From positions 62,001 to 126,000 of IMG/VR virus record IMGVR_UViG_3300042564_002819: a stretch of DNA of 64,000 nt; one strand, written 5' to 3'. The notes below the pieces were generated by a model. That model was not told where the DNA came from. It saw only the letters and a list, made by a program, of their open reading frames with translations, and made no database searches. Positions 1 through 30,918 of this stretch are shown in pieces (positions within the stretch are counted from its first letter, which is position 1; every line of letters starts with the position of its first letter). Position numbers and translations under genes: made by a program.

Positions 1-565
1 CTTTACTTAGGCTAATTGAAAACGTCTTGATAGCAGAATGTGACAAATCTATATCAATGTTTTTACACTGTCCTAGCCATGCTGCATCTATGTGAACGTC
101 GATAGAGTTTTTGTAACAAAAGTCTAAGAGTCGATCTATGTCGGGTATATTCCCTGCTGTTTTAACAGAAGGATAAGAAATAACTAGAACTGATCCTGAC
201 GGTATTGCAGAATAATGTGTTACTTTTAAAATTTTTGGATTTAATCTCCAATGATATGCATACTCGCCTTCGAATATTACTAACTTATTACTGTATCTGT
301 AATGCAGTTCGTCTATTTGCTGTGAAACACCTAATATAGCATCAGTAAATTTAAAAGACTCTAAATTTTTAATATTATTTAATTTAGAATTTTTAATCCA
401 AGCTGTAACTTTTTCTATAAAGTATTTTGTATATTGATTGCTATCTGTTGGATATTCTTTCATATCTAGAGAATCTCGAAACCCAATAATTTTACCAACT
501 AACATAGGAGGAATTCTAGATGTTAAAAACTTTTCTACACTTAAGTTATTATAATCCATATACAT
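1..565 (-). CDS. PLP-dependent fold-type-I enzyme (aminotransferase/decarboxylase-like), partial, runs off the left edge; not in the ORF track
   Basis: Manual translation from ATG 565 (or 559): MYMDYNNLSVEKFLTSRIPP...FEGEYAYHWR...LVISYPS...DVHIDAAWLG...TFSISLSK, open to base 1. D-A-A-W and S-L-S-K match the PLP-binding Asp and Schiff-base Lys motifs. Confidence 0.75.
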   Translation of the reverse strand, partial: MYMDYNNLSVEKFLTSRIPPMLVGKIIGFRDSLDMKEYPTDSNQYTKYFIEKVTAWIKNSKLNNIKNLESFKFTDAILGVSQQIDELHYRYSNKLVIFEGEYAYHWRLNPKILKVTHYSAIPSGSVLVISYPSVKTAGNIPDIDRLLDFCYKNSIDVHIDAAWLGQCKNIDIDLSHSAIKTFSISLSK

Positions 566-1916
566 CGCCTTTTAACAATGCCCATGTTTTTTCGCATACA
601 TCTTTTAGTTTTTCTTTTCTTGACTTATCTAATGTATTTGTATAATACCAAAACTTTTCTAAATCTTTAGAATGATCTTCTGAGTTCATAAATTTTATAT
701 ATTGATCTAATATCTTACAAAAATACTTAAAGTTTTCCGATTTTTCTTTTTCGGTTAAATCTAGCAACGAAATCTCTGCTTTAGCTTCAATCTTTTTTTG
801 TTCAAAGTAATTTTCTATCCACTGCTTACTTTCTTTTGGAAATATTTGAATATTTAAGAACTTTGGATTATGTAAAGGATGCGGACTTATTACCGGCTTG
901 TGTTGCACCTCAACATTAATTCTTTTAAATTTTTGTTTGATTTTCCAAAGCATCATATCAGGCAAGTGAACTAGATTATATGCTTGTATAGTAGCAGCCC
1001 ACCATATTTTAAAATCTCCTTCAGCAGCGTCTAATTTTCGCATATTTTCTTCTATCTTGTGCCATTTGCTAGGATTTCTTATATAATCGTTTATTGGTCC
1101 TACAGCATCAACACTCATTCCAATTTGTATACGTTCAAAATGCTTCCAAATATTCCAAGCACGTTCTGGAATATTAGTAATATTTGTATTGTATTCTATC
1201 ACAATAGATTTAGATCTTCCGGCATCTATGCACTTTTGTAAAAACTCGTAATGTTGGTCTATTAATAAAGGTTCCCCTCCAACGATGTATAATCGTTCTA
1301 TTGTAGGAATTTCTTGTTCCATTTCCTTCCAAAAAGCAGGCTTTTCGTACCAAGAATAGATATCAACTTCGGGTTTATGCTTTCCGTTTGCTGTTTTTAT
1401 TAATTTTACAGTTTGCCCGCTATCTTTATATTGATTTCCCCAAAGCAATACGTTGTCATCGTACCACTGACTGCTATCTGTAGGCCCACACATTCTACAT
1501 TTTAAATTGCAAAGATTTCCAAAACGAAGATCCATGTATTTTATAGGATTTTCTTCTAAATCAATTGATCCATCTTGCTTCGTTTTTGATATGGCATCTT
1601 CTTTATTAATTACATGAGCCCATATATCTCTTTCCCAACTAGCTCTACTTTCCATTCCTGATTCTGCTTCACGTTTACATCTAATGCATGATTCGTGATA
1701 TTCATTATTTAACATAGCTAATCTAACTTCTTTCATTAGATTGCTGTTTCTAAATCCGTGTATAGTTTCAGTTGATAGGTTGTAATTCGATCCTGTTTCT
1801 GTTTTTACTAATCCCTGATTAATACTAACATTTGCATTACAACATATTCTTACATCGCCGTTATTTCTTACATTTAAACTCATCCACGGCAGTGGACAAA
1901 ATGCGTTATTTTCCAT
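549..1916 (-). CDS. Radical SAM protein with N-terminal Twitch (half-SPASM) domain
   Basis: N-terminal CPLPW...ICC...CIRC, then CNLKCRMC, GGEP and YNTN. Confidence 0.9.
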   Translation of the reverse strand: MENNAFCPLPWMSLNVRNNGDVRICCNANVSINQGLVKTETGSNYNLSTETIHGFRNSNLMKEVRLAMLNNEYHESCIRCKREAESGMESRASWERDIWAHVINKEDAISKTKQDGSIDLEENPIKYMDLRFGNLCNLKCRMCGPTDSSQWYDDNVLLWGNQYKDSGQTVKLIKTANGKHKPEVDIYSWYEKPAFWKEMEQEIPTIERLYIVGGEPLLIDQHYEFLQKCIDAGRSKSIVIEYNTNITNIPERAWNIWKHFERIQIGMSVDAVGPINDYIRNPSKWHKIEENMRKLDAAEGDFKIWWAATIQAYNLVHLPDMMLWKIKQKFKRINVEVQHKPVISPHPLHNPKFLNIQIFPKESKQWIENYFEQKKIEAKAEISLLDLTEKEKSENFKYFCKILDQYIKFMNSEDHSKDLEKFWYYTNTLDKSRKEKLKDVCEKTWALLKGDVYGL

Positions 1917-1930
1917 TTATAAATCCTATA

Positions 1931-2980
1931 TTAAGAAAGTTGCTTATCGTTTTTATTTTTTCCATGTCCGCTACTAAACTCAAATTTTTTGCCACAAGTT
2001 CTACCGCATGTATATATTCTTTTAAATGTATCGTCTTGATTATTCCAGGAATTGTGTAAATATGAATTAAAAAAGTCATGTTTTAGTACATCCCAACCGT
2101 GTATTCTCATATCATTAAAACTTTCCCCATAAAGATTTTTTATATGATCAAAGCTAGGTTGTTGTTTGTTTTTATGATGGAAGTAACTTGGGGCCCCAAG
2201 CCAACAACACGGCCAAAGTTTCATCGTCATATCAACAAAAACAGTTTTATCAATTTTATATTTACAGCTAATCGGTGTTGTTAAAACATAATTTTCAAAA
2301 TCTTTAATTGAATCTTTATCTTTCTTGTTATGATTAGTAGGAGTATCCTCAACAACGTTGCCTTTTTTTGTAACAGTATTTTTTTGATCTTGATCTGCAA
2401 AACGAGCAGTATATTTAACTGTGAATTTTTTAAATCCAAGACTGTTTGCTAAGTTTTGTGCTTGTTCAATTTGATGATAGTTGTGTTGAAACTCTATAAA
2501 TGCCCATTCTGCATGGCCCCCGGCCGAAATAAATGCTTCTGCATTTTTAATTATTTTATTAAAATCACTACCAACTCTGTATAATTGATTTGTGTCTTCT
2601 AATCCGTCAATACTAAAAATAATTGACAACTTTTCTGCTGACTTTTTGGCTAATTCTGCCCACCATTCTGGCTTACGCATACTTCCATTTGTTGCAATTC
2701 TTACATGCTTTACATTTTTTGTTAAGCAATATTCATGAGCTGCGTCAAAGGTAGGACTTGCAATCACATCGCCGTAATTTCCGCAATGAAAGATTGTTAC
2801 CTGATTCTCTTTGAAAGGTTGCAAAATTATCTCATAGTCTGATACAGTTAGATCAGTTATTGGCATGCTAGGATTTAATGTATTGTTAAACATCCTAGCA
2901 CATTGAGGACATGCACAATTACATCTACTTGTATGATCTATTTGTATTTTTTGAATTTCTTCTAAATTTAAATAGTTCAC
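1931..2980 (-). CDS. Radical SAM protein with C-terminal Twitch-like domain
   Basis: CNCACPQC near the N-terminus, GNYGD, TNG, FSIDG; C-terminal C...WPCCW...CGRTC. Confidence 0.88.
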   Translation of the reverse strand: MNYLNLEEIQKIQIDHTSRCNCACPQCARMFNNTLNPSMPITDLTVSDYEIILQPFKENQVTIFHCGNYGDVIASPTFDAAHEYCLTKNVKHVRIATNGSMRKPEWWAELAKKSAEKLSIIFSIDGLEDTNQLYRVGSDFNKIIKNAEAFISAGGHAEWAFIEFQHNYHQIEQAQNLANSLGFKKFTVKYTARFADQDQKNTVTKKGNVVEDTPTNHNKKDKDSIKDFENYVLTTPISCKYKIDKTVFVDMTMKLWPCCWLGAPSYFHHKNKQQPSFDHIKNLYGESFNDMRIHGWDVLKHDFFNSYLHNSWNNQDDTFKRIYTCGRTCGKKFEFSSGHGKNKNDKQLS

Positions 2981-3630
2981 AGTCTATCAAATCCCCATCG
3001 ACGTTCAGCACAAAACCAGCAATTACCACAATGTTTTTCAAAGTTGTCAGTGTATTTCTCACAACTTCTAGTCATAGGAAATAATGTATCAAAGACATTA
3101 AAATAACGGTACAATTCTGCTACATCTCTTTTATTAAAGTTAATCAATGGATGACATGCCGTTCCTTCGTAGATGTTTTTTAGTCTTTCTCTGTCTGGTG
3201 GATCAGTCCATCCTCGCCAATATACACTTCTCGGTATTGCGTTTTTTGGAGGATTTTGTGTTATTCCAGCAAAATGAAATTGAATTTTATTGTTTTTATA
3301 TAAGTTATTAGTTAATAGTTGTTGTGTTTTAATATAATTTTCATCTTCTGGCAAAGGGCTATATGCTGTCTCGTGTTCCAAAAAAATATCGCCAAACTCT
3401 TTTTTATAAAACTCGACTATTTTTTTAGCAAACTGAATTTGAAAAGCTTTGCCTTCTTGATCAACAGTTATTGGAACAATTTTTAAGTCAGGCCTTTCTT
3501 CAACTACATATTTAGATAGTATGTATCCTGTAATTGCACTATCTGCACCCCCTGAGATTTTTAATCCCACAGATGAAACATTATTAAAAACTACAATATT
3601 TAGATTGTGTTTGCTATGAGGAATTATCAT
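2977..3630 (-). CDS. QueC-like PP-loop ATPase (7-cyano-7-deazaguanine synthase family)
   Basis: PP-loop ISGGADS; C-terminal Zn motif TRSC-x10-CGNCWFCAER; 217 aa. Confidence 0.75.
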   Translation of the reverse strand: MIIPHSKHNLNIVVFNNVSSVGLKISGGADSAITGYILSKYVVEERPDLKIVPITVDQEGKAFQIQFAKKIVEFYKKEFGDIFLEHETAYSPLPEDENYIKTQQLLTNNLYKNNKIQFHFAGITQNPPKNAIPRSVYWRGWTDPPDRERLKNIYEGTACHPLINFNKRDVAELYRYFNVFDTLFPMTRSCEKYTDNFEKHCGNCWFCAERRWGFDRL

Positions 3631-5042
3631 TGTAAAATCTCGGTAAAGATAGGAAAAACTTTTAAAAATTTATCTTCCCATTGTCGTTGTTTGTTAATAA
3701 GAGATATGTATTCTTTTGTTTCTGGTAATCTTTCCGACCAATCTTCACTGTTCATAAAATTTATAATACCTTTGAATCTTTTAATTCCGTAAGGATTTTC
3801 TAAAAACTGTTCTTTAGAAATGTTGTTTTCTTTTACTCCAGTAAACTGTTGCCAATTGTCTTCTATCCATGGATAAAAATCGTTTTCGTATTTGTCTGTA
3901 ATTTGTTTTTTAACATTTTTCGGCAATACTTTTACATTTAATTGAGGAGGCCAGTACGCAAAGTGCATGTTTATGCCGCCGGCTCCTAGTGGCCAAGAAT
4001 TTATCTTTTTAAAACCTTGTTGAGTTTTCCATTTTACAAACTCCGGTATATAAGCAATATTAAGAGCCATTATAGTAGTTGCCGTTGTTACTTCAACTTG
4101 AGGTGCAGTATTGTCTAGTTTCCAAAACACTTCTTCCTGGTGTTGCCACTGACTAGGATATCGAATATAATCATTGTGTTCTCCGTGTGCATCTATACTA
4201 TAATGAAATCTAACACGTTTAAACTCTGCCCATAGATCAAATAAATCACTACGCCATTCAACTGCATTGCTATTGTAACGTAACTCTATATTCTTTGCAT
4301 ACCCACGTCTAATGCATTCTTCTAATAGATCATAATGTTCATCTATAATAAGACTTTCGCCTCCGGCAAAGTATAGTTGATACATATGAGGAATTTGTTC
4401 AAACAAGTCTTGCCAGAATTTTGGATTATTTTTATGCCAATTATAGCTAGCACCGTGTACTCTGCCTTTATTTTCCCACTGACTAGTACCTTTTAATCTT
4501 TCATTTGTTATTTGAGGGTACAAAGAATTCCATTCTTTTACCCAGCCGCTCGAATCGTGAGGACTACACATTACACAAGCAAGCTGACACTTTGTACCCA
4601 TACGCAAGTCAATATACCGTATTTTCGGGGGTATAGAACCGTCAGCGGCAGTTTCATTAACTAATTCTTGTAGGTCAAAGCGGCTTGCCCAATAATCGGT
4701 TTCCCAATTTCTTTTACTAAGATGTCCAGCTTCTTCTTCTTTGTAACACTTTAGACAACTAGCAGGCTTTTCGCCACGAAGCATCATCTTACGAACATTA
4801 CGCATATATCCGCTGTTCCATGCTTCTTCTAGGCTAGTATGATTAAAATTAGCAGGAACGCCCGAGTCGTTCTTTACGACTCCAACTTCGCCACCACCGA
4901 TTTTGTTACTGCTGTCTGGATCTTGAACACTGCTGGCGTTACTTGTGCAACATGTTCGCATTTTTCCATCCGGTCTACTTGATAAGTGTAGCCACGGCAA
5001 TGCACAAAAGGTAGGCGAAATATGATTGTATTTTTCTGACAT
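3627..5042 (-). CDS. Radical SAM protein with N-terminal Twitch domain
   Basis: CALPW...TCC...CLKC, then CQLACVMC and AGGE; paralog of 549..1916. Confidence 0.9.
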   Translation of the reverse strand: MSEKYNHISPTFCALPWLHLSSRPDGKMRTCCTSNASSVQDPDSSNKIGGGEVGVVKNDSGVPANFNHTSLEEAWNSGYMRNVRKMMLRGEKPASCLKCYKEEEAGHLSKRNWETDYWASRFDLQELVNETAADGSIPPKIRYIDLRMGTKCQLACVMCSPHDSSGWVKEWNSLYPQITNERLKGTSQWENKGRVHGASYNWHKNNPKFWQDLFEQIPHMYQLYFAGGESLIIDEHYDLLEECIRRGYAKNIELRYNSNAVEWRSDLFDLWAEFKRVRFHYSIDAHGEHNDYIRYPSQWQHQEEVFWKLDNTAPQVEVTTATTIMALNIAYIPEFVKWKTQQGFKKINSWPLGAGGINMHFAYWPPQLNVKVLPKNVKKQITDKYENDFYPWIEDNWQQFTGVKENNISKEQFLENPYGIKRFKGIINFMNSEDWSERLPETKEYISLINKQRQWEDKFLKVFPIFTEILQ

Positions 5043-5050
5043 GTTAATAC

Positions 5051-6130
5051 TTATTTAAACTGTTCTGCAAAAGGATCAAACTCGATACCACATTTCATAG
5101 CACAAACTTTTAATTTTCCATTTTCGTAACTGTTTTCATGCCACGACGCTTCTATAAGATCAAAAATTTCTGTAGAAAATACACGTTCTAAACCATGTAT
5201 CTTAGCATTTATTGCATCTTTGCCGCCGGCAAAATTAATAAATTGCCATATTTGTTCTTGTTTAGGATCTTTTTGCCACCATTTGTACATTCGACCAGCA
5301 GTCCAACAACAAGGCATTGCTATCCCTTCTGCTGTAATAAACAAACTGCCTTCGTCTTTTACCTTGCATCTGATAGGAGTTTGTTGATAGTAAGCATCCA
5401 TGCTTCCGTATTTTATTTCTAACAATGTTTGCTTCTTTAATGCATTGTTTACATATTTGTCATCGGGCTTTTTAAGTTCGGTTGTTTGATTACCTTTTCG
5501 ATCAATTGCTTGGTGTGATTCTTTTTTCTTGCTATCTTGCGTAATAAATCTACCAGTTTTTTTAGCAACAAACTTTTCAAAGCCTAATTCCTTTGACAAC
5601 GCTTCTGCGTCTTCGACCTGATGTTGGTTATGTTCAAATATTAAAAAATCCCAACGTGCTCTGCCGCCGGCTGCAATAAATGCTCGCATACTACGTTCGA
5701 CTATATTCCAGTTAACACCTTGACGATACAAATGATTTGTATCACCGAGTCCGTCTACACTAAAAATAACAGTACCTGCTCTTCCAAGTATAGTTGCAAG
5801 TTCTTGCCACCATTCGGGATCACGGGCGCCAGCATTTGTATTCATGCTTAACCACATCTTAGGATTATTTTGTCTAAAATAGCGAAATATTTCTAGTGTG
5901 TCTCGAGCAACAATTGGATCTCCTAAATTACCGCACATATACATGGTGTTTAGCTGTGCTATAAATTCCGGTGTGAATATTTTTTTACAATCATCGAGTG
6001 TTAGTTCACTTAAATCTATATGAGGATTTAGTGCTCCGCCGTTTTGATTACGGTCACACATAGGGCAACTAGCTTGACAGTTTTGTGTTACTTCTAAGTG
6101 TATGGTTTTTATATCTTTATATTCATACAT
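5051..6130 (-). CDS. Radical SAM protein with C-terminal Twitch-like domain
   Basis: CQASCPMC, GNLGD, FSVDG; C...PCCW...CAMKC; paralog of 1931..2980. Confidence 0.88.
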   Translation of the reverse strand: MYEYKDIKTIHLEVTQNCQASCPMCDRNQNGGALNPHIDLSELTLDDCKKIFTPEFIAQLNTMYMCGNLGDPIVARDTLEIFRYFRQNNPKMWLSMNTNAGARDPEWWQELATILGRAGTVIFSVDGLGDTNHLYRQGVNWNIVERSMRAFIAAGGRARWDFLIFEHNQHQVEDAEALSKELGFEKFVAKKTGRFITQDSKKKESHQAIDRKGNQTTELKKPDDKYVNNALKKQTLLEIKYGSMDAYYQQTPIRCKVKDEGSLFITAEGIAMPCCWTAGRMYKWWQKDPKQEQIWQFINFAGGKDAINAKIHGLERVFSTEIFDLIEASWHENSYENGKLKVCAMKCGIEFDPFAEQFK

Positions 6131-6350
6131 CGTATATTAACTCTACATCCTTTCCTGGACCTATTTTACTAGGAAGATCACCGTATTGCTCTATGTACCA
6201 TTTAATTACAGCTATATACCAATTTTGACTATTATGATGTGCCTGTTTATTAAATTGAAAAATATTATTATTAGTTGCTTGTATTGTGCTTAACGCACGG
6301 GCACTTTCTTTTTGTAAATCTCTTAAACTTAACTTTGTTAAATCATTCAT
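6123..6350 (-). CDS. Small hypothetical protein (75 aa)
   Basis: Fills the gap exactly and overlaps both neighbours (ATGA coupling at 6347-6350). Confidence 0.7.
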   Translation of the reverse strand: MNDLTKLSLRDLQKESARALSTIQATNNNIFQFNKQAHHNSQNWYIAVIKWYIEQYGDLPSKIGPGKDVELIYDV

Positions 6351-10432: not shown

Positions 10433-10435
10433 AAA

Positions 10436-11962: not shown

Positions 11963-11980
11963 AGGTAATCCTTTTTTACA

Positions 11981-12008
11981 ATTATAACTAATTTATTAAA
12001 AATGTCAA
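11981..12008 (-). promoter_or_regulatory. Sigma70-type promoter TTGACA-N16-TATAAT
   Basis: Perfect consensus hexamers on the minus strand (-35 at 12008-12003, -10 at 11986-11981), followed by SD AAGGA and ATG at 11962. Confidence 0.8.
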
Positions 12009-15254: not shown

Positions 15255-15267
15255 CTTAGTACTTTCT

Positions 15268-23874: not shown

Positions 23875-25169
23875 ATATTTGCACCGTACTTTTCTACAAA
23901 GTTATTTAATTCAATAGGTTTTAAATTTGCAAGATTTTTGAAATTATATTCTCTTATTTCTTTCGTTCTTGCATAAAATGTGTGTAATTCCATAGGACTC
24001 CATTTTGAAATAGTTCTACAGAGCGAAATTATCTTTTTCATTCTTTTTTTAGGGTCTGATTCATTATCGTAGCCTTCATCCCAGAAATCCGAAAACGTTT
24101 GAAATCCTAATTTTCTTAAAGATTCTAAAGTTTTTGCTGGACCAACAATAATAAAAGGTTGTTTAAAAATTATAGGTTTAATAGTTTTTTCAGTCATATG
24201 TATGATGTTATTCTCAAAGTTAGTTTCAGAAACTATACTTATATAAGTTTTATCATACCAACTTATTGTGTCCTCAAGTCGATCTTCCATAGGAAATCTT
24301 GAAAAGTCGTGAGTATCTAAAACATAGGGCAACGAATCGTACACTTGGTATAACTCGTCAATCTTTAATCTTATATCGTATTCTGCTACTGCCCGTTGTG
24401 CGTCGTGAATCCAATGTTCCACTGGAACATCTCTTGAAAAACTCATATGTGTACGTTTTAGCAAATCATGCTCAAAAAACTTTAATAATAAAATGTATCT
24501 ATGCAATCTGTGACGTCTATTGAAATTTAGAAATAATTTTTCTTTTTTAACATTTGCATCTGTTCTCTTTGAGAATACAGGATCTTTGCATACCACACGT
24601 TGCTGCAAGACATATAATCCTGCATATTCACAGTTTATTCTTTCTTCGATACAATATTTATTGCAATATTTTTCATAAATTTCTTGTGAATTTGCACAAT
24701 TATTTAAGTATATTACTTTATTCAAAGGTATTTGATTTTCTTTAAAATAATCATGTATACTTTTAAAAGTTGCATTATCAACAAAGCTTTCATATTTGTT
24801 AGAAAGTAAAATAAAACCATTCCTATTTCTTACAGCATCTAAAACAGTTTGGCTTACAGGAGTTGTTTGAAAAACACCCAAGTGACTGTTTAATGTAATT
24901 TCTGTAAAAAACTTTCTAGGAGAAAGTAATATTTCATACATAAATGGAGTGTCTCCAAGACTTTCAACGTCGTACGAAGGAACAAATCTACATTTAACAT
25001 AATCTTTTATTAACATCGAAATCGGATCTTGCTCATCTGTTACAGAATTGCTGTCCCATCTTAAATACGGCAATCGTTTTATTAAATCATACAGGTCCGG
25101 TACCTTGTAGTTATTCAACGGACCTTCTGGTCCTATCCAGTCATATACAAAAACCAGTTCTTTATTCAT
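23871..25169 (-). CDS. EKT-motif protein (putative GT10-like glycosyltransferase)
   Basis: FLNFNRRHRLHR, VSET...MTEKTIKPI..KQPFII.G...GFQTF..FWDEGYD. Probable start ATG 25169 after AGGA (ORF track 25187). Confidence 0.55.
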   Translation of the reverse strand: MNKELVFVYDWIGPEGPLNNYKVPDLYDLIKRLPYLRWDSNSVTDEQDPISMLIKDYVKCRFVPSYDVESLGDTPFMYEILLSPRKFFTEITLNSHLGVFQTTPVSQTVLDAVRNRNGFILLSNKYESFVDNATFKSIHDYFKENQIPLNKVIYLNNCANSQEIYEKYCNKYCIEERINCEYAGLYVLQQRVVCKDPVFSKRTDANVKKEKLFLNFNRRHRLHRYILLLKFFEHDLLKRTHMSFSRDVPVEHWIHDAQRAVAEYDIRLKIDELYQVYDSLPYVLDTHDFSRFPMEDRLEDTISWYDKTYISIVSETNFENNIIHMTEKTIKPIIFKQPFIIVGPAKTLESLRKLGFQTFSDFWDEGYDNESDPKKRMKKIISLCRTISKWSPMELHTFYARTKEIREYNFKNLANLKPIELNNFVEKYGANI

Positions 25170-26004
25170 AGTCATTCCTACAGTCAAGTGCTTTTTTAAA
25201 ATTTAATAATTTTTGATTTGTTGAAAGTCTTTTTTCTAACATAATTAAATTAATCTGTGTTTGAAAGTCAAAATTTGTCATTACTTCGTCGACATATTCT
25301 TCCATTTTTACAATATTTAAATCTAATATTTTTAAAGATACTATTTCTTTAATATACATTAGTGTGTAATTTGTTAATGGGTGATCGTCGTGATAGTGTT
25401 GCATTTTTTTATCATTGTCTACATAGTAACAATTTTTTATTGGCATTTTTTTACTACGAAAAAAAACCGTCATTGTTTTACTATCAATAAAATGATTTTT
25501 ATATAATGAGAGCTTTTTAATTAACGAATTATAAAAATAAGAAAGAGTTGTATCTATAAACAATTTTGAAATTTCGTTAGAATAAACCATACTATCAGGA
25601 GACATAAACATAAAATACCATTTACAACCTGTATTTTCTAATAAATTTATTAAATTAACCATATACGTTAGTGTTTTTATTATTGAAGTTTTATCTGAAA
25701 TTAAAAAATCTAATTTAGCTTTTGTTAACTGTTCAGATGTTAAACTTCCTAAACACACCCAATCTCCATTTTCATTGATGTAATCAGTTCTGTTTGGTTC
25801 TGTCCACTGTATTATTACCGTATCAGTATTTTTTACTTTATTACTGAGTAATACGTTGGTTGCTTTGTGAAATATATAAAAATTTCCACATCCTGGATTT
25901 CCATAATTTTTTGTCACATTGTAACTTTGTGCCACAATGTCTGGCCACATCGGCCACGAATATTGAGCAAAACTGCATCCAAACGTATATAGGTTACCCT
26001 GCAT
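25162..26004 (-). CDS. SGNH-like protein
   Basis: FGCSFAQ, NYGNPGCGN, IQWT..NR.D, late DDHP; same motif layout as 12005..12850. Confidence 0.55.
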   Translation of the reverse strand: MQGNLYTFGCSFAQYSWPMWPDIVAQSYNVTKNYGNPGCGNFYIFHKATNVLLSNKVKNTDTVIIQWTEPNRTDYINENGDWVCLGSLTSEQLTKAKLDFLISDKTSIIKTLTYMVNLINLLENTGCKWYFMFMSPDSMVYSNEISKLFIDTTLSYFYNSLIKKLSLYKNHFIDSKTMTVFFRSKKMPIKNCYYVDNDKKMQHYHDDHPLTNYTLMYIKEIVSLKILDLNIVKMEEYVDEVMTNFDFQTQINLIMLEKRLSTNQKLLNFKKALDCRNDYE

Positions 26005-27370
26005 TGGTAGTAGTATCCTTACATAGATTATAAAAATTTTCCATTTCAGGAAATGTTTCTAAAAAGTTTACATTTCTTCTTCTATCGTACTCTTTAAACC
26101 AGTTATAAAAGTCTTTTCTACCTTCGACAATTTTATTTTCTTCGTATGCTACCGATGCAAAATAGTTTCTAACACGACGAAATCTTTCATATTCTAAATC
26201 AGAGAATTTAGTAGTATCTTTTTCGTCTGTATTGTCTTCTATAAATTTTAATATTTTATCAAAATAAGGAAGAAATTCTTCCTTAGGAAGAATATGCATA
26301 TCATATTGCAACGGTTCTTTTAAATACGGAGTATCAAACCTAATTCTTCTTCTCGACGGATGATGATATTGTTTACGCCATTCTAGTATTTTTTCTAAAA
26401 ACAAAGTAAAACTAGTAACACTTAAAATATTAAAGGTACACATGAAAGTAATATCTGCACCAGTAACGTCTAAGTAGTTTTTCATATTTGATTCCCACAA
26501 ATCGACATCTAATCCGGTTCTCATATACTCAGCACGTTTTCCAAAAGAATCTATACTTGAATAAAGTTTAAACTTTTTTATGGAGTTTGTTTCTAATAGC
26601 TCGTTAACACTGGTTGATAACTTTGTTACTAATCTCGGACTTATACCCAAGTTACTATTTAAATTAAGTTCAAGGTGAGGACGGGGATCTTTTTTCAATC
26701 TCTCAAATAAATTCCATGTGCTTTTATGCATCAACGGTTCGCCACCTGTAATTCTTAAAATATTTAGAGTTTTTGAAAGCTCAGGCCACCATTCCCACCA
26801 TGCTTTAATGTAAGGATTGTTATCTTCTTCCATTGGCTTAAACCAGTCAATGTCTAGTGCATGGTTGTTAACACCTTCGACTTTTCCAAACTTTTTAATT
26901 TCAGCATGATAAGAACTACTTGCCATTGGGTGGCAATATCCACATTTAAAATTGCATTCATTTGAAAATGCAACTTCAACATATTCAGGATTAACGTTAA
27001 AATCCCACGGCTTTGTTAGAATTTCTTCAACTCTCTCAGGCTTATAAATTGATTGGTTTCTAATCATTCTATCTGAGATGTGATCGTTACCAAGAGATTC
27101 TACATTCCAACAGTATTTACAGCCTTCAGGTTTTTCACCAATAAGCATCTTTGCACGTTCTTTTTTCTTTGTTAGAGTGTTGTGCAAAGCACTAGGATTA
27201 TTTTTTATTTCCGACAAAGAAATAGCGTGAGGAGCAGGATGATAACAACTGTGGGTATCACCTGTGTGCAAGTATATTGTTGTATGATGCCATTTAGCTA
27301 AACAAAACGTTGGACTTATTTTGTCCATTTCTGTATTTTGTTGCTTGATTAAGTCTGTTTCTGAAGTCAT
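25994..27370 (-). CDS. Radical SAM protein with N-terminal Twitch domain (CxAKW/HSCYHP subtype)
   Basis: CLAKW...HSCYHP...CKYCW, CNFKCGYC, TGGEP; paralog of 10436..11962. Confidence 0.9.
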   Translation of the reverse strand: MTSETDLIKQQNTEMDKISPTFCLAKWHHTTIYLHTGDTHSCYHPAPHAISLSEIKNNPSALHNTLTKKKERAKMLIGEKPEGCKYCWNVESLGNDHISDRMIRNQSIYKPERVEEILTKPWDFNVNPEYVEVAFSNECNFKCGYCHPMASSSYHAEIKKFGKVEGVNNHALDIDWFKPMEEDNNPYIKAWWEWWPELSKTLNILRITGGEPLMHKSTWNLFERLKKDPRPHLELNLNSNLGISPRLVTKLSTSVNELLETNSIKKFKLYSSIDSFGKRAEYMRTGLDVDLWESNMKNYLDVTGADITFMCTFNILSVTSFTLFLEKILEWRKQYHHPSRRRIRFDTPYLKEPLQYDMHILPKEEFLPYFDKILKFIEDNTDEKDTTKFSDLEYERFRRVRNYFASVAYEENKIVEGRKDFYNWFKEYDRRRNVNFLETFPEMENFYNLCKDTTTNAG

Positions 27371-28299
27371 TGTTCTCTATCTATAAATTGTTGATCGAAT
27401 GTCCTTGCAGGATTTTGATATACTGTTTTAAAAAACTTACTTTGTTCTGCTTCTAGTGGATAAGCCGCAATAGGTAAATCCAACACCGGAATAAGTGCAT
27501 CAGCTAAGTCCTCGCATTTACGGATAATGTTTTCTTCATTGACATTTTTAGTAACAGTATTGTTCCAGTAATCATTAAGCCAGTCAAAGTCTCTAACATT
27601 TACATAATCCCAATCGGATAACATTGTCTTATGTAATCCTTCTCGAGCACCGTAAATAGCCCACATACCGTTTTCTACATCAGCACCTATCATTAACCAA
27701 ATATAAAGTCTGTGTAAATTTTTCCAATGGTTCTTTTTAAAATCTTCTATCGATGGCTTAATGCCGCGGTCGAGCGACATTTTAACGCCTTCGCGAAAAC
27801 CTGCACGCCATGCTTGTTGTGGAGTTGCGTTATTAAAAATTTCACTGTAACAGCTATTCATTTGAATGTATTCTACATCCCAACAAAAATCTACTTGTGC
27901 GTGAGGGTTGTTTGGGTCTGCATTTTCATGAGTTTTCATGTTAAGAACGTATTCTTTTGGCCAGCATTTAAGGCCGCCGTTTCCGTACATAAGACCATTA
28001 ATAGTATTTCGAGCAGTCCAACTAATAACGCACTTTTCTAAATCTTTATTTTCATCAAAGTCAAACTCCTTTGTTAAAAACTCCGATTTAATAGTGTTGT
28101 CGCCGTCAACGGTGATAAATCTATCCGTTTCAGAGAGTTTAGCACATGCCTTATGTGCTGCATCTGAGCCTTTGACTCCGTGAACACGTTTTGCCCATGG
28201 AATTTTTTTGCACAAGTCTGCATAATTTTTTTCTGCATTAGGTTCATCATAACTTAAGTATATAATGTCGTAATCAAGAACTCTAAATTTATTTCCCAT
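27367..28299 (-). CDS. Putative GT-A glycosyltransferase (DGD motif)
   Basis: DIIYLSYDEPNA...HGVKG..AH...FITVDGD...YGNGGLK...AWRAGFRE. Start ATG 28299 after GAGG (ORF track 28347). Confidence 0.65.
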   Translation of the reverse strand: MGNKFRVLDYDIIYLSYDEPNAEKNYADLCKKIPWAKRVHGVKGSDAAHKACAKLSETDRFITVDGDNTIKSEFLTKEFDFDENKDLEKCVISWTARNTINGLMYGNGGLKCWPKEYVLNMKTHENADPNNPHAQVDFCWDVEYIQMNSCYSEIFNNATPQQAWRAGFREGVKMSLDRGIKPSIEDFKKNHWKNLHRLYIWLMIGADVENGMWAIYGAREGLHKTMLSDWDYVNVRDFDWLNDYWNNTVTKNVNEENIIRKCEDLADALIPVLDLPIAAYPLEAEQSKFFKTVYQNPARTFDQQFIDREQ

Positions 28300-28882
28300 T
28301 AATAACCTCGTGATAATATGTTTCAAGTCGTTTAATAGTATATACACTTAATAATCCAACAGTGTGTTCTATTTGATTTTCAAATAAAATTTCATAGTCA
28401 TTGTAAATTAAATCTGTTAAATTAACAATAATGCATCTTTCCAATTGATGCGGATCATTAAATCTAGTAATGCTAAACATTAAGGGTCTGTCTAAAGATA
28501 CTTTTTTTGTTTTTAAGTTTTCTTTTATAGACTCATCTAGTTTAAAAACCCATTTTTTATTTTCAATGTCTTGTACTATAGTTAAGTCTGGCCTAGAACT
28601 ACTCTTATATTCTGGTATTTTATGTACCTGTGTATTAATATCAAAGACAACTTCTTCGTTGTTAAATCTATGCTTTAATATATAGTTCTTTTTTATTGTA
28701 TCAAAGATTACTTGATAAGTGTGAAACTGTTCCTGACCTGTGATTAAATTATAAACTTCGTCAACGTCTACCTCAATATACAATCCTTCGCTGTCGTTAG
28801 AATTTCCTACTGAGAGTAAATTTCCCAAATCGTCAAAATAAACAAATTTTTTGTTTGAAACATATAGATTATCTGTGTTCAC
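28289..28882 (-). CDS. Hypothetical protein
   Basis: 197-aa ORF filling the operon gap; no recognisable motif. Confidence 0.7.
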   Translation of the reverse strand: MNTDNLYVSNKKFVYFDDLGNLLSVGNSNDSEGLYIEVDVDEVYNLITGQEQFHTYQVIFDTIKKNYILKHRFNNEEVVFDINTQVHKIPEYKSSSRPDLTIVQDIENKKWVFKLDESIKENLKTKKVSLDRPLMFSITRFNDPHQLERCIIVNLTDLIYNDYEILFENQIEHTVGLLSVYTIKRLETYYHEVINGK

Positions 28883-28883
28883 G

Positions 28884-29726
28884 CTATATTCCTAAAAACT
28901 TTTCGTATATAGATATTATTTCGTCCGAAGCAAAATCTTTTTCTGTATAATGAAATATACCCGATTGCTTGTAATTACCAATTTTTAAGTTTAAATTTTT
29001 ATCTAAATACACGCCAACTTTGTCTTGCCATCGGTCAGTCTGAATTAATTTCCAATCTTGACACCTAGCTTTCATGTGAACGAAGTACGGATAACTAGTA
29101 TTCGGACTAGCTATTTTATTTTCGCAATTCAAAATCTTTGTTACAATTGCTGCACTTAAATCAACACTAGGAAATTTTTGAAAATATTTTCCGCCGGCGT
29201 ATTGTCCATAAAATAATTCCCAATTGTTCATCACTAATTCTAACCACTTGTAAAAGTTATGTGCTTCGTCACTTTTTTCAAAATAGTTAAATGCACTATA
29301 CAAGTTTGGCAAATTATGATTTATAAAGGCTTTACGATAATAAGGACTGGTAATTTCGTCGCCGCGATAAGTGATAACTTTTTTTGTAAAAAATACATTG
29401 TATCCTTTTAAAAAGTCCCACCAATGACTTATGTTTTCTAATACTAATACATCAGAATCAAGAACTATTGTGCGAGAATATGGAGTAGCATGATATATTT
29501 TCCATCTATTTTCTATTTTCCAGCTTGATGATTGTGCAGTATCTTCCCAAGGAATATTAACTATGTCATCAAAAACAGACTTTGTTTTAGTATCAATGCT
29601 ATCGTTAGTAATTAAGCAGATTTTGCTATCTGGATTTGTTGATCGTATGCTTAATGCTGCTAAGTATGCCTGTTTAACATAATTATGCTCACTGTTTTGT
29701 GCTAAAATAGTAAAATTAAGACTCAT
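28884..29726 (-). CDS. Putative GT8-like glycosyltransferase
   Basis: YHATPYSRTIVLDSDV (DxD), FVHMK; paralog of the next gene. Confidence 0.65.
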   Translation of the reverse strand: MSLNFTILAQNSEHNYVKQAYLAALSIRSTNPDSKICLITNDSIDTKTKSVFDDIVNIPWEDTAQSSSWKIENRWKIYHATPYSRTIVLDSDVLVLENISHWWDFLKGYNVFFTKKVITYRGDEITSPYYRKAFINHNLPNLYSAFNYFEKSDEAHNFYKWLELVMNNWELFYGQYAGGKYFQKFPSVDLSAAIVTKILNCENKIASPNTSYPYFVHMKARCQDWKLIQTDRWQDKVGVYLDKNLNLKIGNYKQSGIFHYTEKDFASDEIISIYEKFLGI

Positions 29727-30564
29727 TGTCGATAATCCTATTTAAGTTTATCTTATTCATTATGTGTACATTACTTTGTTTAATCTTAACAGGAAAATAA
29801 TTAGTCGAACTTTTATTGTTTTCGACTAAAAATAAAAACTCCTCGTCTTTAATTTCAAGAATCAAATCTCTGTCAAGTGTATAATACATAGTGCCTGGTA
29901 AACTTTTTACAAAGTTTCCTGATTTATATCCATTCATAACATGTACAGCTATACTAAATGCATAGTCATTCCTAAACGTAGCATAAGGCAACTGATAAAT
30001 GTTTTTGTAATGATACCAATTTTCTTGTATGTGCTGAATTAAATTAAAAAATATTTTATTTTTTTCTGTTTTTCTAAAAAAAACTACAGTTGCCCAATAA
30101 AAGTTAGGGCCTGTTTCACTAATTTTAGAAAATTCACTAACATCTCTCCATCCTGACAATTCAACTGCGTCTTTGTACATCATTAAATCGTGAGGTTGAT
30201 TGAAACAGTTTAGTAAGTCTGCGTTAGAAATTATAAAATCTGTATCAAGTAAAATAGTTTCGTCGTACGGAGACAGATCATATGCACGACTTCTAGAATC
30301 ATTTTTATACTCTAAATTTTTTCTTACATAAATCCCGTCATTGTATTTTTTATATTGAATCGTTTTTTCGTTTTTTATTTCGATAACTTGATCAAAGATT
30401 GTTTTGTAATTGCTAAACGATTTTTTTAAATACGCTGCATTGTCTGTAATAATGCTAACAGGTAAATTTAAATATTTTTTAATACGATTTGCAGCATAAA
30501 CCGCTTGTTTTGTATAATCTACTTCGCTATTATTTCTTGCTATTAATAATGCTCCGCTAGTCAT
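29716..30564 (-). CDS. Putative GT8-like glycosyltransferase
   Basis: YDLSPYDETILLDTDF (DxD), FRNDYAFSIA, VHIMNK. Confidence 0.65.
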   Translation of the reverse strand: MTSGALLIARNNSEVDYTKQAVYAANRIKKYLNLPVSIITDNAAYLKKSFSNYKTIFDQVIEIKNEKTIQYKKYNDGIYVRKNLEYKNDSRSRAYDLSPYDETILLDTDFIISNADLLNCFNQPHDLMMYKDAVELSGWRDVSEFSKISETGPNFYWATVVFFRKTEKNKIFFNLIQHIQENWYHYKNIYQLPYATFRNDYAFSIAVHVMNGYKSGNFVKSLPGTMYYTLDRDLILEIKDEEFLFLVENNKSSTNYFPVKIKQSNVHIMNKINLNRIIDNES

Positions 30565-30908
30565 AAATCAATAATACCTTCAATACTTCTATTGCTTCGT
30601 AACTTATTGTATGCAACTAGATAAGTATTGGCAGCTTTCCAGTAAACATTAACAATATCGCTTGTAAACTTTTCAAGATCTTCGACCTCGATAGGAATGT
30701 CGTTGTCATCTATCAAAATAGTGTTGTTTTGATTCAATTGTTTCAAACTTTGACAAAAGCTTAACAATTGTTGAGTTACTGTAAACCTACCGCCACTAAA
30801 ATAAAATATAATATTGTCTTGATACTGTTCTTTTAAAATTCTTTTTTGATTTTCAAGAGTAATCATGTAATTACTAAAATCAAGTGCTTTTTCTAAACGT
30901 TCATCCAT
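30561..30908 (-). CDS. Hypothetical protein (115 aa), first gene of the enzyme operon
   Basis: SD AGGAG before the ATG; ATGA overlap with the downstream gene. Confidence 0.75.
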   Translation of the reverse strand: MDERLEKALDFSNYMITLENQKRILKEQYQDNIIFYFSGGRFTVTQQLLSFCQSLKQLNQNNTILIDDNDIPIEVEDLEKFTSDIVNVYWKAANTYLVAYNKLRSNRSIEGIIDL

Positions 30909-30918
30909 AGAAAACTCC

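Follow-up and report, generated by a model that had tools for sequence, protein, structure and literature searches.

A candidate glycan-tailoring island rich in radical SAM enzymes lies within the tail-fibre module of a jumbo phage

Directly after its tail-fibre genes, a freshwater jumbo phage carries a long run of biosynthetic genes, which raises the question of what these genes make and to what the product is attached. We examined a 64,000-nt window of the viral record IMGVR_UViG_3300042564_002819 (positions 62,001 to 126,000), with coordinates below referring to this window. A first-pass annotation had described positions 1-30908 as a cluster of about 29 co-oriented genes comprising seven radical SAM (rSAM) enzymes, eight putative glycosyltransferases (GTs) and a set of tailoring enzymes, proposed to build an elaborately modified glycan, most plausibly on the Ser/Thr-rich fibre or baseplate proteins. 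We found that the cluster is real and larger than was described, whereas the proposed interpretation was borne out only in part.

Layout and extent of the island

All ORFs in 549-30908 lie on the minus strand, as do all the features given below, and include 27 ORFs of at least 80 aa and a 75-aa ORF at 6123-6350, while a further gene is cut by the window start (1-565), giving 28 complete genes plus one cut gene. Most junctions overlap or are at most 14 nt apart, and the only real gaps are 42 nt (11963-12004) and 60 nt (30909-30968). The 42-nt gap holds a perfect sigma-70 consensus promoter (TTGACA-16-TATAAT, 11981-12008), the only 12-of-12 match in window 1-20000, and the 60-nt gap before the first island gene holds a sigma-70-like promoter (TTGACT-17-TATCAT, 30933-30961) scoring 10 of 12, which is common in AT-rich DNA.

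The island continues ~19 kb beyond window position 1, an extension missed by the first-pass annotation, and in total spans ~49.9 kb and 47 genes (59,067-108,970 of its own contig) with 17 rSAM enzymes. Beyond the window lie 10 more rSAM genes, three PP-loop ATPases, an Asp/Asn beta-hydroxylase-like oxygenase and a saccharopine-dehydrogenase-like enzyme, followed by a fibre-like gene with Mtd_N and Chlorovirus-glycoprotein-repeat matches. At the other end, the island is bounded upstream by five tail-fibre or fibre-like genes (30969-38334) with PHROG tail-fibre hits, one of which (32967-34457) contains a Peptidase_G2 intramolecular-chaperone domain, and three of which are preceded by an ATAAATA motif. 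The island is thus flanked by fibre-like genes on both sides, which had also been missed. The host of the island is a phage, as its baseplate wedge is 36% identical to those of Atu_ph07, SCTP-2 and PA5oct, and a near-identical IMG/VR record is 330 kb. All 16 PF04055 hits in that 330-kb genome fall inside this one island, excluding chance as an issue.

Enzymes and predicted folds encoded in the island

Profile searches against Pfam and NCBIfam confirmed all seven rSAM enzymes in the window, each of which has CxxxCxxC. Four belong to NCBIfam NF033640, termed here N-terminal-twitch rSAMs, with scores of 312.9 (25994-27370), 310.6 (10436-11962), 413.9 (3627-5042) and 368.3 bits (549-1916) against a cut-off of 170. 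The third, the most conserved member, had 2116 metagenome homologues at E<=0.001, the 120 best of which are 68-88% identical, and no relative was detected by sequence in the PDB. Across the whole island there are eight paralogues of NF033640, a family with no relative detected by sequence in the PDB, and all eight keep four N-terminal Cys, CxxxCxxC and GGE. Two further rSAMs, at 5051-6130 and 1931-2980, form a second family, designated B; the former has an N-terminal CxxxCxxC in ~360 aa, matches PF04055 and is 59-68% identical to homologues in the viral contigs L005, L009 and L029, whereas no NCBIfam subfamily reaches its cut-off. The seventh (19728-21653) combines PF02310 and PF04055 and is a cobalamin-binding (class B) enzyme, probably a C-methyltransferase, with its best NCBIfam match (KedN5-type, 242 bits) below the cut-off of 700.

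Profile or PDB sequence searches also supported a UDP-glucose/GDP-mannose 6-dehydrogenase (16503-17678; PF03721 and PF00984) with 51-59% identical homologues in related islands, an NAD-dependent sugar-nucleotide epimerase/dehydratase (22912-23874; PF01370, E 1.5e-37), a 2OG-Fe(II) oxygenase (14514-15254; PF13640, E 6e-15) and a StrB1-type amidinotransferase (12850-13890), which matched PDB 1bwd over its full length (E 2.6e-101) and also SxtG, HsvA and AGAT. A PP-loop (QueC/NAD-synthase-like) ATPase (2977-3630) scored 28.3 bits against a cut-off of 22 for PF06508, but only 25 against 150 for the QueC equivalog TIGR00364. A DegT/DnrJ/EryC1-like PLP protein (13880-14608; PF01041, 77 bits) is only 242 aa and aligns with just the N-terminal ~110 aa of a 400-aa DegT.

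By contrast, the eight GT candidates are supported only at the fold or motif level, as none gave a Pfam hit even at E<=10, and the GT8 and GT10 HMMs missed the whole contig at E<=1. A family of four (23871-25187, 21650-22912, 17675-19738 and 15268-16506), related by blastp paralogy, models as a GT-B fold with Z about 10-11. The model of the first member (pLDDT 72.7) matched OtsA, SPS, TarM and BshA in the PDB by Foldseek with probability 1.0 and gave VIA Z scores of 10-11, including H. pylori alpha1,3-FucT at Z 10.0; it has a GT10-like E...TEK motif and invariant R230, E321, E333 and K334. The 687-aa member at 17675-19738 apparently has two GT-B C-terminal-type modules, given two separate blastp matches to paralogues at residues 120-307 and 465-604. 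A DxD family, consisting of 27367-28347 and the C-terminus of 7859-10432, models as GT-A. The former (pLDDT 81.6), with invariant D81-x-D83, matched by Foldseek WrtF, SunS/ThuS, RmlT and ppGalNAc-T in the PDB and PNAG and hyaluronan synthases among Swiss-Prot models; the latter is an 857-aa protein whose C-terminus is 35% identical to 27367-28347, while its N-terminal ~630 aa stay unexplained. The paralogous GT8-like pair, putatively of GT-A type, at 29716-30564 and 28884-29726 is supported only by a DxD motif in their alignment and by ESM-Atlas neighbours, which for the former are virus-only clusters, a few of which at 0.95-0.96 carry GT8/Mannosyl_trans3.

The remaining assignments of the first-pass annotation were not verified and rest on short motifs read by eye. 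These are a sulfotransferase-like N-terminal P-loop motif in a 227-aa protein (6347-7030) without a Pfam, PHROG or PDB hit, Rossmann methyltransferase-like motifs in a 282-aa protein (7030-7878) that is conserved in the core cassette but has no HMM hit, a PLP-enzyme-like SxSK motif in the 293-aa gene whose 5′ part is at 1-565, and two SGNH proteins, for which 12005-12850 (281 aa) gave only PF00657 at E 0.14 and no PDB match. Proteins of unknown function comprise a 115-aa protein, c115 (30561-30908), and a 197-aa protein, u197 (28289-28882), neither with a Pfam or PHROG hit, a 280-aa protein (25162-26004) without a Pfam, PHROG or PDB hit but with homologues in the viral contigs L015-L017, and the 75-aa protein (6123-6350), which is translationally coupled to the next rSAM gene and is 75% identical in L029 and 56% in L053.

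Conservation of the core cassette beside fibre genes

Whether related genomes keep the cluster linked to fibre genes had been named in advance as a test of the proposal, and our survey answered in its favour. The order fibres, c115, the two GT8-like genes, a 197-aa-type protein, GT-A and N-terminal-twitch rSAM is kept at 26-69% identity in the viral contigs L017, L024 and L049-L053, and also in ORFs 354-347 of the cultured Ralstonia phage RsoM2USA. In these contigs, in L048 and in RsoM2USA (ORF354), c115 is always the first gene after the last fibre gene. u197 has a sequence match at 83% in L048 and 37% in L049-L052, whereas in L053 and RsoM2USA only a same-sized 184-aa ORF occupies the position, without a blastp match. 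The island varies from ~8 kb (L049) to ~50 kb in the present phage. The cassette is nevertheless patchy, as only one of 50,697 GenBank phage records has it.

A model for glycan assembly and its possible acceptor

To explore what the main rSAM family acts on, we examined its bacterial homologues. In a bacterial genome (G106, GC 54%), one 854-aa ORF fuses ABC_tran, Wzt_C (the O-polysaccharide exporter ATPase), the twitch domain and the rSAM domain, preceded by a 6-TM, 271-aa protein that we infer is Wzm and followed by three more N-terminal-twitch rSAMs. A pooled scan of the ORFs neighbouring this locus and a second bacterial locus (G177) tallied RmlC, RmlD, epimerase, WbsX, GT2 and TylF families, among them rhamnose-pathway and GT families, although the tally does not say which locus each comes from. 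These observations point to glycan tailoring rather than to peptides or DNA. Together with the NDP-sugar enzymes and the GT-A and GT-B folds, they make glycan chemistry the best reading. The alternative of DNA hypermodification is further weakened because the 330-kb genome has no TGT/DpdA and no thymidylate-synthase-like enzyme.

Taking these observations together, we suggest, with fair confidence, that the locus is an expandable glycan-assembly and glycan-tailoring island built into the host-recognition module of a jumbo myophage. The gene content and paralogy, the modelled GT folds with their invariant catalytic-type residues, the StrB1-type amidinotransferase, the conserved cysteines of the rSAM paralogues and a phage MetK (L002:13022-14116) are shown by the analysis, whereas the following steps and the acceptor are inferred. 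In this view, UDP-glucose dehydrogenase, the SDR epimerase/dehydratase, the DegT-like protein and the amidinotransferase would make uronic, amino and guanidino/amidino sugars or cyclitols, with MetK, encoded ~10 kb away, supplying SAM. Eight soluble GT candidates (four GT-A-type and four GT-B-type) would then assemble an oligosaccharide in the cytoplasm. Subsequently, the 17 rSAM enzymes (8 N-terminal-twitch, 4 of the second family, 2 others and 3 cobalamin-dependent), 4 PP-loop ATPases, 2-3 Fe/2OG oxygenases and several small enzymes assigned by motif alone would introduce C-methyl, keto/deoxy/epimer, amide/amidine and hydroxyl changes, and duplication and loss of rSAM cassettes would vary the product between related phages.

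The acceptor is unresolved and is inferred only from absences and from gene position, and we only tentatively propose, as part of the whole model, the phage's own virion proteins, namely the fibres, the 206-aa protein or the 4603-aa structural protein encoded just upstream, which would be glycosylated in the cytoplasm before assembly such that the glycan is part of the host-recognition surface or shields it. Slightly favouring virion proteins over host envelope glycan, no polytopic membrane protein was found anywhere in the island and no Bac_transf, WecA-type or ABC-2 permease in the 330-kb genome. The GT families also fall in virus-only ESM-Atlas clusters, although the Atlas taxon labels rest on few members, and the same core cassette occurs in a Ralstonia phage from soil, in phages from lake water and in phages from other viral metagenomes whose habitat we did not determine. 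However, a Ser/Thr-rich fibre as acceptor, as first proposed, was not established, since S+T of 21-29% is ordinary for fibres and adjacency alone does not separate modifying the fibre from modifying its receptor. Moreover, the sigma-70-type promoters in the two gaps are of the class that precedes SbcCD-like and 5′-3′ exonuclease genes, and the ATAAATA motif of the structural genes is absent there, which fits early expression, as a host-directed function would also need, although the Chlorovirus capsid GT A064R is likewise reported to be early. No experimental datum exists for the island, with no RNA run listed and the RsoM2USA virion study not having looked for glycans (PMC8504454). The bacterial homologues, in turn, act in a lipid-linked O-polysaccharide pathway, which weighs against this explanation.

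Structural matches of the GT candidates, which include Chlorovirus A075L and peptide/protein GTs, also favour a virion acceptor, but these are weak. Fibre-linked GT/rSAM clusters comparable to the one analysed here, which the first-pass annotation had not mentioned, were already noted, without function, in marine pelagimyophages (PMC7029224).

Anatomy of the island and annotation of its genes

The 64-kb window is the reverse strand of positions 25,975-89,974 of a single 121,779-bp viral contig with 34% GC and no terminal repeat, and every long ORF in the window lies on the minus strand. Window 30,969-63,792 is a myophage tail module containing baseplate wedge and hub/lysozyme genes, a 4603-aa virion structural protein, a conserved 206-aa protein, and five fibre or fibre-like genes, one of which (32967-34457, minus strand) carries a C-terminal Peptidase_G2 intramolecular-chaperone autoproteolysis domain (E 1.1e-5), as in endosialidase-type tailspikes. 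The 4603-aa protein is a single ORF between the baseplate wedge and fibre genes (38969-52780, minus strand) that matches phrog_10938 (virion structural protein) at 1082 bits, and its counterpart in Ralstonia phage RsoM2USA, ORF361, was found in virions by mass spectrometry (PMC8504454). The baseplate wedge protein is ~36% identical to those of jumbo phages Atu_ph07, SCTP-2 and PA5oct, and an IMG/VR record of 330,024 bp, rated 93% complete by CheckV, carries a 100% identical copy of an island gene. The contig is therefore about a third of a jumbo-phage genome. Runs from lake and river metagenomes of at least 17 studies hold one of its rSAM genes, whereas a megablast of window 1-20000 and 52000-64000 against GenBank phages gave no match. 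Just upstream of the tail module and divergently transcribed from it lies an SbcC-like (AAA_23/SMC_N) and SbcD-like (Metallophos) pair (4202-6996, minus strand, of L004, one of four loci, L001-L004, examined outside the window), homologues of which flank a GT-B family gene in viral contigs L019 and L028. A tRNA scan of L001-L004, which did not include the window itself, found none.

Downstream of the last fibre gene lie 27 ORFs of at least 80 aa, a 75-aa ORF and one gene cut by the window start, all co-oriented and mostly overlapping at their stop and start codons. The first-pass annotation had described this stretch as a radical-SAM/glycosyltransferase biosynthetic cluster of at least 31 kb directly downstream of the tail-fibre genes and had proposed that each gene be checked by HMM and structure-prediction annotation. 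With that annotation carried out, the observation held, and the feature is larger than was reported. HMM or PDB sequence searches confirmed seven rSAM enzymes, UDP-glucose dehydrogenase, an NAD epimerase/dehydratase, a 2OG-Fe(II) oxygenase, a short DegT-like protein, a PP-loop ATPase with a QueC-like C-terminus, and an amidinotransferase. The amidinotransferase matches streptomycin StrB1 over its full length, with residues 4-343 aligning with 5-344 of PDB 1bwd (E 2.6e-101), although its catalytic Cys-His-Asp triad was not examined. The DegT-like gene (13880-14608, minus strand) encodes only 242 aa, overlaps the preceding 2OG oxygenase ORF by 95 nt, and aligns with only the first ~110 residues of a full-length DegT from a related contig. 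A 205-aa version exists in contig L022, and the protein may be a truncated or repurposed domain. By contrast, the sulfotransferase, methyltransferase, second PLP enzyme and SGNH assignments of the first-pass annotation rest only on short motifs and found no support in these searches.

The eight putative glycosyltransferases hit no Pfam model even at E<=10, so we tested them by paralogy, alignment and structure prediction. The four-member family (genes starting at 23871, 21650, 15268 and 17675) has invariant R230, E321, E333 and K334 and a fucosyltransferase-like motif in the C-terminal domain (consensus ET..F.TEK..KP), and its model is a GT-B fold, for which Foldseek gave probability 1.0 to OtsA, SPS, TarM and BshA and VIA gave Z 10-11, including Z 10.0 to the H. 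pylori alpha1,3-FucT 2nzw, but other GT-B families scored equally. Whether this family belongs with the GT10 fucosyltransferases is left undecided by the profile PF00852, which had no hit at E<=10 in the protein scan and none in the whole contig, as the contig search detected nothing in any control genome either and its silence shows little. The 687-aa member of this family (17675-19738, minus strand) matches its paralogues in two separate regions (residues 120-307 and 465-604), suggesting an internal duplication or a two-module transferase. The DxD family (27367-28347 and the C-terminus of the 857-aa protein) models as GT-A, close to WrtF, SunS/ThuS, RmlT and ppGalNAc-T. The model of 27367-28347 hit GT-A enzymes at probability >=0.99 and D81 and D83 are invariant, while no Pfam GT2 hit was obtained. 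The pair 29716/28884 has a DxD motif and Atlas neighbours that are virus-only, a few of which carry GT8 or Mannosyl_trans3, but the GT8 profile PF01501 gave no hit at E<=10 in the protein scans or at E<=1 in the whole contig, so that only these neighbours and the DxD motif support a GT8-like fold. The only canonical Pfam Glycos_transf_1 hit in the 330-kb genome (G001:C1:25375-25803, plus strand) lies ~4.4 kb beyond the end of the contig and outside the island, and more glycan genes may lie there. Pfam searches at E<=10, PHROGs and PDB sequence searches returned nothing usable for the 857-aa, 280-aa, 281-aa and 227-aa proteins, the PP-loop ATPase and the N-terminal-twitch rSAM enzyme 3, and only a weak NifB hit for member 1 of the rSAM family B, and an ESM-Atlas search with the N-terminal 625 aa of the 857-aa protein was uninformative.

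Beyond window position 1 the contig carries 10 more rSAM genes, three more PP-loop ATPases, a further 2OG-like protein, an Asp/Asn beta-hydroxylase-family oxygenase, an SDR-like protein and a saccharopine-dehydrogenase-like enzyme, followed on the opposite strand by a fibre-like gene with Mtd_N and Chlorovirus-glycoprotein-repeat matches. The whole island spans contig 59,067-108,970, which is 49.9 kb and 47 genes, and all 16 PF04055 hits in the 330-kb genome fall within it. About 10 kb beyond the island lies a phage-encoded S-adenosylmethionine synthetase (L002:13022-14116, minus strand, contig 119021-120115; all three MetK domains, E 1e-31 to 1e-56), a plausible SAM supply for the rSAM enzymes, whereas searches for phage-encoded Fe-S assembly (IscA-type) or flavodoxin genes that might support them found none. 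In L002, a MoxR-type AAA ATPase also lies next to a DUF2201 metallopeptidase/VWA protein (6672-9153, minus strand), both of unknown function in the phage.

Radical SAM families and their candidate substrates

Adding a weak seventeenth to the 16 PF04055 hits gives 17 rSAM enzymes, comprising 8 N-terminal-twitch enzymes of NCBIfam NF033640 (N_Twi_rSAM), 4 members of a ~360-aa family (family B), 2 others and 3 cobalamin-binding enzymes. The CxxxCxxC motif for the SAM-binding [4Fe-4S] cluster is present in all 17, 7 of them in the window. Scores against the PF04055 gathering threshold (29.5 bits) did not settle superfamily membership by themselves, because in the whole-protein scans only 19728-21653 cleared it in the window (58.5 bits) and the other six scored 20-29 bits, while in the 330-kb genome search 13 of the 16 hits cleared it. 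Seven of the 8 N-twitch paralogues exceed the curated NF033640 cut-off of 170 bits, scoring 195-414 bits over model positions ~1-397, and the eighth (L001:2495-3718) scores 132.6. All eight keep four N-terminal Cys (C13, C31, C96 and C99), CxxxCxxC and GGE, so they look active, and they show the N-terminal Cys-rich twitch domain able to hold an auxiliary Fe-S cluster. Pfam SPASM matches lie at the N-terminus. The three class B enzymes, 19728-21653, L001:8253-9767 and L001:11559-13037, have PF02310 followed by PF04055, both above cut-off, but do not belong to a characterised subfamily (KedN5, PhpK or RiPP C-MT), with best scores of 242 against 700, 103 against 600 and 107 against 282.

NF033640 has no relative detectable by sequence in the PDB, we found no characterised substrate, and the family is rare in the bacteria sampled (3 of 401 Pseudomonadota genomes searched) but abundant in aquatic viral contigs. 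In one of these bacterial genomes (G106, GC 54%), a 271-aa protein with six predicted TM segments, which we infer to be Wzm, is followed by a single 854-aa ORF (8579-11143, minus strand, of locus L042) containing ABC_tran, Wzt_C (the Wzt C-terminal carbohydrate-binding domain), the twitch domain and the rSAM domain, and then by three further N-twitch rSAM genes. We know of no described Wzt-rSAM fusion. A pooled Pfam scan of the neighbouring ORFs of two bacterial loci (G106 and a second genome, G177) tallied RmlC, RmlD, epimerase/dehydratase, WbsX, GT2 and TylF-type sugar O-methyltransferase families, without assigning them to one locus. The MAG 'Gammaproteobacteria bacterium MED685' (L029) and the MAG 'Bdellovibrionales bacterium MAG-22' (L030, L044 and L045) hold 13-14 NF033640 matches each, on low-GC contigs (34-40% in L044 and L045) that resemble the phage island and may be phage contigs binned into bacterial MAGs. 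A fusion to the O-polysaccharide ABC-transporter ATPase is strong contextual evidence that this family tailors glycans or their precursors, and argues against a RiPP or nucleic-acid role.

We therefore considered it unlikely that the rSAM arrays install cross-links, epimerisations or C-methylations on the giant structural protein, the fibres or a small precursor such as the 75-aa ORF, with the sugar genes as a separate neighbouring function. In line with such a role, there are weak NCBIfam similarities to sactipeptide, ranthipeptide and cyclophane maturases and to RiPP C-methyltransferases, the small conserved ORF (6123-6350) is coupled to an rSAM gene, and an Asp/Asn beta-hydroxylase-like oxygenase lies in the island. 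However, those similarities are all far below family cut-offs whereas NF033640 is passed, the one informative cellular context is a polysaccharide export locus, no RRE/PqqD-like domain, leader peptidase or YcaO was found in the Pfam scans, and the 75-aa protein is 75% conserved along its whole length and has no Cys, unlike typical precursors of thioether-forming enzymes.

DNA hypermodification, an alternative named by the first-pass annotation, is less likely still. Phage DNA glycosylation has precedent, the four QueC-like PP-loop ATPases together with rSAM enzymes recall 7-deazaguanine pathways, and early-type promoters are present, but no TGT/DpdA (PF01702) and no thymidylate-synthase-like hydroxymethylase was found in the 93%-complete 330-kb genome, where QueD, QueE and FolE were not searched separately. 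In addition, the PP-loop proteins fail the QueC equivalog TIGR00364 (25.4 bits against 150), with only the C-terminal ~55 residues matching PF06508, the island lies in the fibre module and not with the replication genes, and the bacterial homologues are in polysaccharide loci.

Also unlikely is a free small molecule, in which the island would make a diffusible or intracellular aminoglycoside-like or aminocyclitol pseudo-oligosaccharide that inhibits competitors, host defences or host translation and is attached to no macromolecule. The StrB1-type amidinotransferase sits next to a DegT-family protein and a twitch-type rSAM, BtrN is a twitch rSAM of aminoglycoside synthesis, class B rSAM methyltransferases and soluble GTs are typical of aminoglycoside clusters, and there would be no carrier or exporter requirement inside the cell. 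A trio of DegT-like, amidinotransferase and rSAM genes was called antibiotic-synthesis genes in cyanophage S-SCSM2R (PMC12801897). However, the Pfam scans of the island genes returned no inositol-phosphate or 2-deoxy-scyllo-inosose synthase family, for which no dedicated search was made, and no resistance or efflux gene, eight GTs is far more than known aminoglycoside pathways use, and the conserved position inside the fibre module and the Wzt-fused bacterial homologues point to polymers.

Linkage to the fibre genes and candidate acceptors

To determine whether the linkage to the fibre genes is fixed among related phages, a synteny test that the first-pass annotation had proposed, we compared related contigs. 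The order fibre genes, c115 (a 115-aa protein), GT8-like a, GT8-like b, ~190-aa protein, GT-A, N-twitch rSAM recurred at 26-69% amino-acid identity in several IMG/VR contigs (L017, L024, L049-L053), and also in the cultured 343.8-kb Ralstonia jumbo phage RsoM2USA (MG752970.1; L054:11376-17737), directly after its fibre genes, as ORFs 354-347. These comprise c115, two GT8-like proteins, a 184-aa protein, a GT-A, an N-twitch rSAM, a second GT-A and a Rossmann-like protein, all annotated 'hypothetical protein'. By tblastn, RsoM2USA is the only one of 50,697 GenBank phage records with homologues of the GT8-like and GT-A genes, none being found in its reported sister XacN1. In L049-L052, the region between the last fibre gene and the Mtd_N fibre-like gene is only ~8 kb, compared with ~50 kb here, and in L049 (7506-8492, minus strand) and equivalents in L051 and L052 an rSAM gene 51% identical to one at the far end of this island sits in reverse orientation between two fibre genes. 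A second conserved cassette, comprising a GT-A of ~233 aa, a 282-aa Rossmann-like protein, the 75-aa protein, rSAM family B member 1 and N-twitch rSAM 3, occurs in other contigs with varying numbers of N-twitch paralogues, and members 1 and 3 are 59-82% identical between contigs. N-twitch rSAM 3 alone has 2116 metagenome homologues at E<=0.001, the 120 best of which are 68-88% identical, and homologous cassettes are very common in aquatic metagenomes. The island is thus a modular, expandable part of the host-recognition module.

With DNA set aside, the choice is between the phage's own virion proteins and host lipid-linked envelope glycans exported by host machinery. A hydropathy scan found no polytopic membrane protein in the island, and Bac_transf, WecA-type transferases (Glycos_transf_4) and ABC-2 permeases (ABC2_membrane) were not found in the 330-kb genome, arguing against a self-sufficient polysaccharide export pathway. 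Virion proteins are favoured by this soluble enzyme set, by GT families that appear virus-only, by the presence of the same core cassette in a soil Ralstonia phage and in phages from lake water and other viral metagenomes, and by precedent in mycobacteriophages, chloroviruses and mimivirus. The Ser/Thr richness of the fibres as a clue to O-glycosylation was rejected as uninformative, as S+T is 21-29% with no low-complexity S/T tracts.

Alternatively, the same enzymes could act on the host's undecaprenyl-linked O-polysaccharide, LPS or capsule intermediates at the cytoplasmic face, with host Wzm/Wzt or Wzx/Wzy exporting the altered glycan, which would block superinfection or stop progeny from sticking to debris, and the genes would sit with the fibres because both track the same receptor. 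This reading, which we regard as the strongest rival although unlikely, is favoured by the bacterial N-twitch rSAMs in an ABC-transporter-type polysaccharide locus and fused to Wzt, by early-like promoters, and by the absence of an exporter of the phage's own, as expected if it borrows the host's. Against it, no membrane-associated or lipid-carrier enzyme was found, host exporters are generally selective (not tested here) and a new 8-GT glycan would be hard to export, the GT families appear virus-specific and not recent host copies, NF033640 is rare in cells, and the core cassette occurs in phages of very different habitats.

The promoter evidence points to early expression. The 42-nt gap inside the island carries the only perfect TTGACA-16-TATAAT in window 1-20000 (11981-12008, minus strand), and the 60-nt gap at its head carries TTGACT-17-TATCAT (30933-30961, minus strand). 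On this contig, 12 sites match with at most one mismatch, five of which lie at most 40 nt upstream of a gene start in an intergenic gap, the genes being SbcD-like and its neighbour, a 5'-3' exonuclease, and two rSAM genes. The MoxR-type and DUF2201 genes are likewise each preceded by a sigma-70-like promoter. The motif ATAAATA occurs 28 times on both strands, nine of them within 60 nt upstream of gene starts against about 0.75 expected by our calculation (about 12-fold enriched), including the baseplate wedge gene, the 206-aa gene and three fibre genes, where it sits 15-49 nt upstream of structural genes. Two promoter classes seem separable on this contig, and one ATAAATA also precedes a cobalamin-rSAM gene in the island (contig 97252-98766, minus strand). 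No terminator-like site separates the last fibre gene from the island, so read-through from the late genes is also possible, and no RNA run was listed for the fibre/island junction, only DNA runs from lake and river metagenomes holding the phage.

Taking these observations together, the feature is most likely a glycan assembly and radical-tailoring island tied to host recognition. The gene content and extent of the island, the fold-level assignments and the recurrence next to fibre genes are results of the analysis itself, whereas glycans as the substrate class are inferred from gene context and the acceptor from gene position and absences. The interpretation of the first-pass annotation, an elaborately modified glycan most plausibly on fibre or baseplate proteins, was thus partly supported. 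We consider the acceptor open and favour virion proteins only slightly, and virion glycosylation is not demonstrated here. If the product decorates virions, the known chemistry of viral glycans widens greatly and a new variable is added to phage-host recognition in the plankton; if it remodels the host envelope, this would be an unusually large phage-encoded surface-conversion system. Either way, a first plausible substrate class, glycans, is assigned to NF033640, and a cultured phage, RsoM2USA, is identified in which the question can be tested directly. More speculatively, and unlikely on present evidence although not excluded by it, phage particles of an abundant but almost uncultured aquatic lineage would carry radical-SAM-tailored glycans, including C-methylated, guanidino/amidino and other unusual sugars, on their fibre or giant structural proteins. 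The N-twitch family would then be a new class of carbohydrate-modifying radical enzymes whose tandem paralogue arrays act as a fast-evolving diversity generator for the host-recognition surface, a glycan counterpart of DNA hypermodification.

Comparison with known systems

Radical SAM enzymes acting on sugars are few and mostly known from antibiotic pathways, whereas here 17 rSAM enzymes sit with 8 glycosyltransferase candidates in the host-recognition module of a phage found in many lakes. Aminoglycoside/aminocyclitol pathways (streptomycin StrB1 and StsC, butirosin BtrN, gentamicin GenK) likewise bring together a StrB1-type amidinotransferase, a DegT-family protein, twitch-type rSAMs and class B rSAM methyltransferases, but the rSAMs here carry the twitch domain N-terminally and are not BtrN homologues by sequence, and the context is a phage fibre module. 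Phage O-antigen conversion (Gtr) systems also alter a surface glycan linked to receptor recognition, but consist of the membrane proteins GtrA, GtrB and GtrC, and no polytopic membrane protein is encoded in this island. In virus-encoded virion glycosylation, as in mycobacteriophage capsid/tail glycosylation (Freeman et al. 2023), Chlorovirus PBCV-1 capsid N-glycans and Mimivirus fibril glycans, soluble virus-encoded GTs and sugar-nucleotide enzymes lie near structural genes and act in the cytoplasm without host export machinery, and our GT-B model gives Z 8.6 to Chlorovirus A075L. Those systems use a handful of GTs and conventional sugar enzymes, and to our knowledge none has rSAM, cobalamin-rSAM, amidinotransferase or PP-loop tailoring.

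The closest description is the host recognition cluster of marine pelagimyophages and cyanomyophages (Zaragoza-Solas et al. 2020, PMC7029224), a large hypervariable region after a giant VrlC-type structural gene that holds tail fibres, glycosyltransferases (GT8 commonest), UDP-glucose 6-dehydrogenase, an Asp/Asn beta-hydroxylase and rSAM cassettes that come and go between close relatives. No function has been shown for it, although its authors guessed that it modifies the host O-chain. The region described here matches that anatomy and its variability (8-50 kb between relatives), and the 4603-aa gene may correspond to VrlC, although neither this nor the orthology of the pelagimyophage genes to these was examined. 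The carrier, however, is not a T4-like pelagi- or cyanomyophage but a 330-kb jumbo phage from lakes and rivers, whose best baseplate-wedge relatives are Atu_ph07, SCTP-2, PA5oct, Rak2-like phages and RsoM2USA, and that study states that freshwater pelagimyophages lack LPS and rSAM genes.

Literature searches for jumbo phages with rSAM and GT genes found nothing specific beyond this study and two others. The T4-like marine environmental genome TARA_ERS488813_N000010, with 12 rSAM genes (Nishimura et al. 2017, PMC5332604), which we did not retrieve for comparison, was discussed only as Fe-S-cluster clients, with no glycan link, fibre linkage or family assignment proposed, and the other is the cyanophage trio called antibiotic synthesis (PMC12801897). 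None of these assigns a substrate or a family. This kind of region has been glimpsed before but never explained. New here are a carrier of another lineage, a jumbo phage from fresh water, the scale of ~50 kb with 17 rSAM enzymes in the non-fibre part alone, the assignment of most rSAMs to NF033640 and the link of that family to O-polysaccharide export loci, the fold-level prediction of unannotated families as GT-A and GT-B, fibre or fibre-like genes at both ends of the island, and a cultured phage that carries the core cassette.
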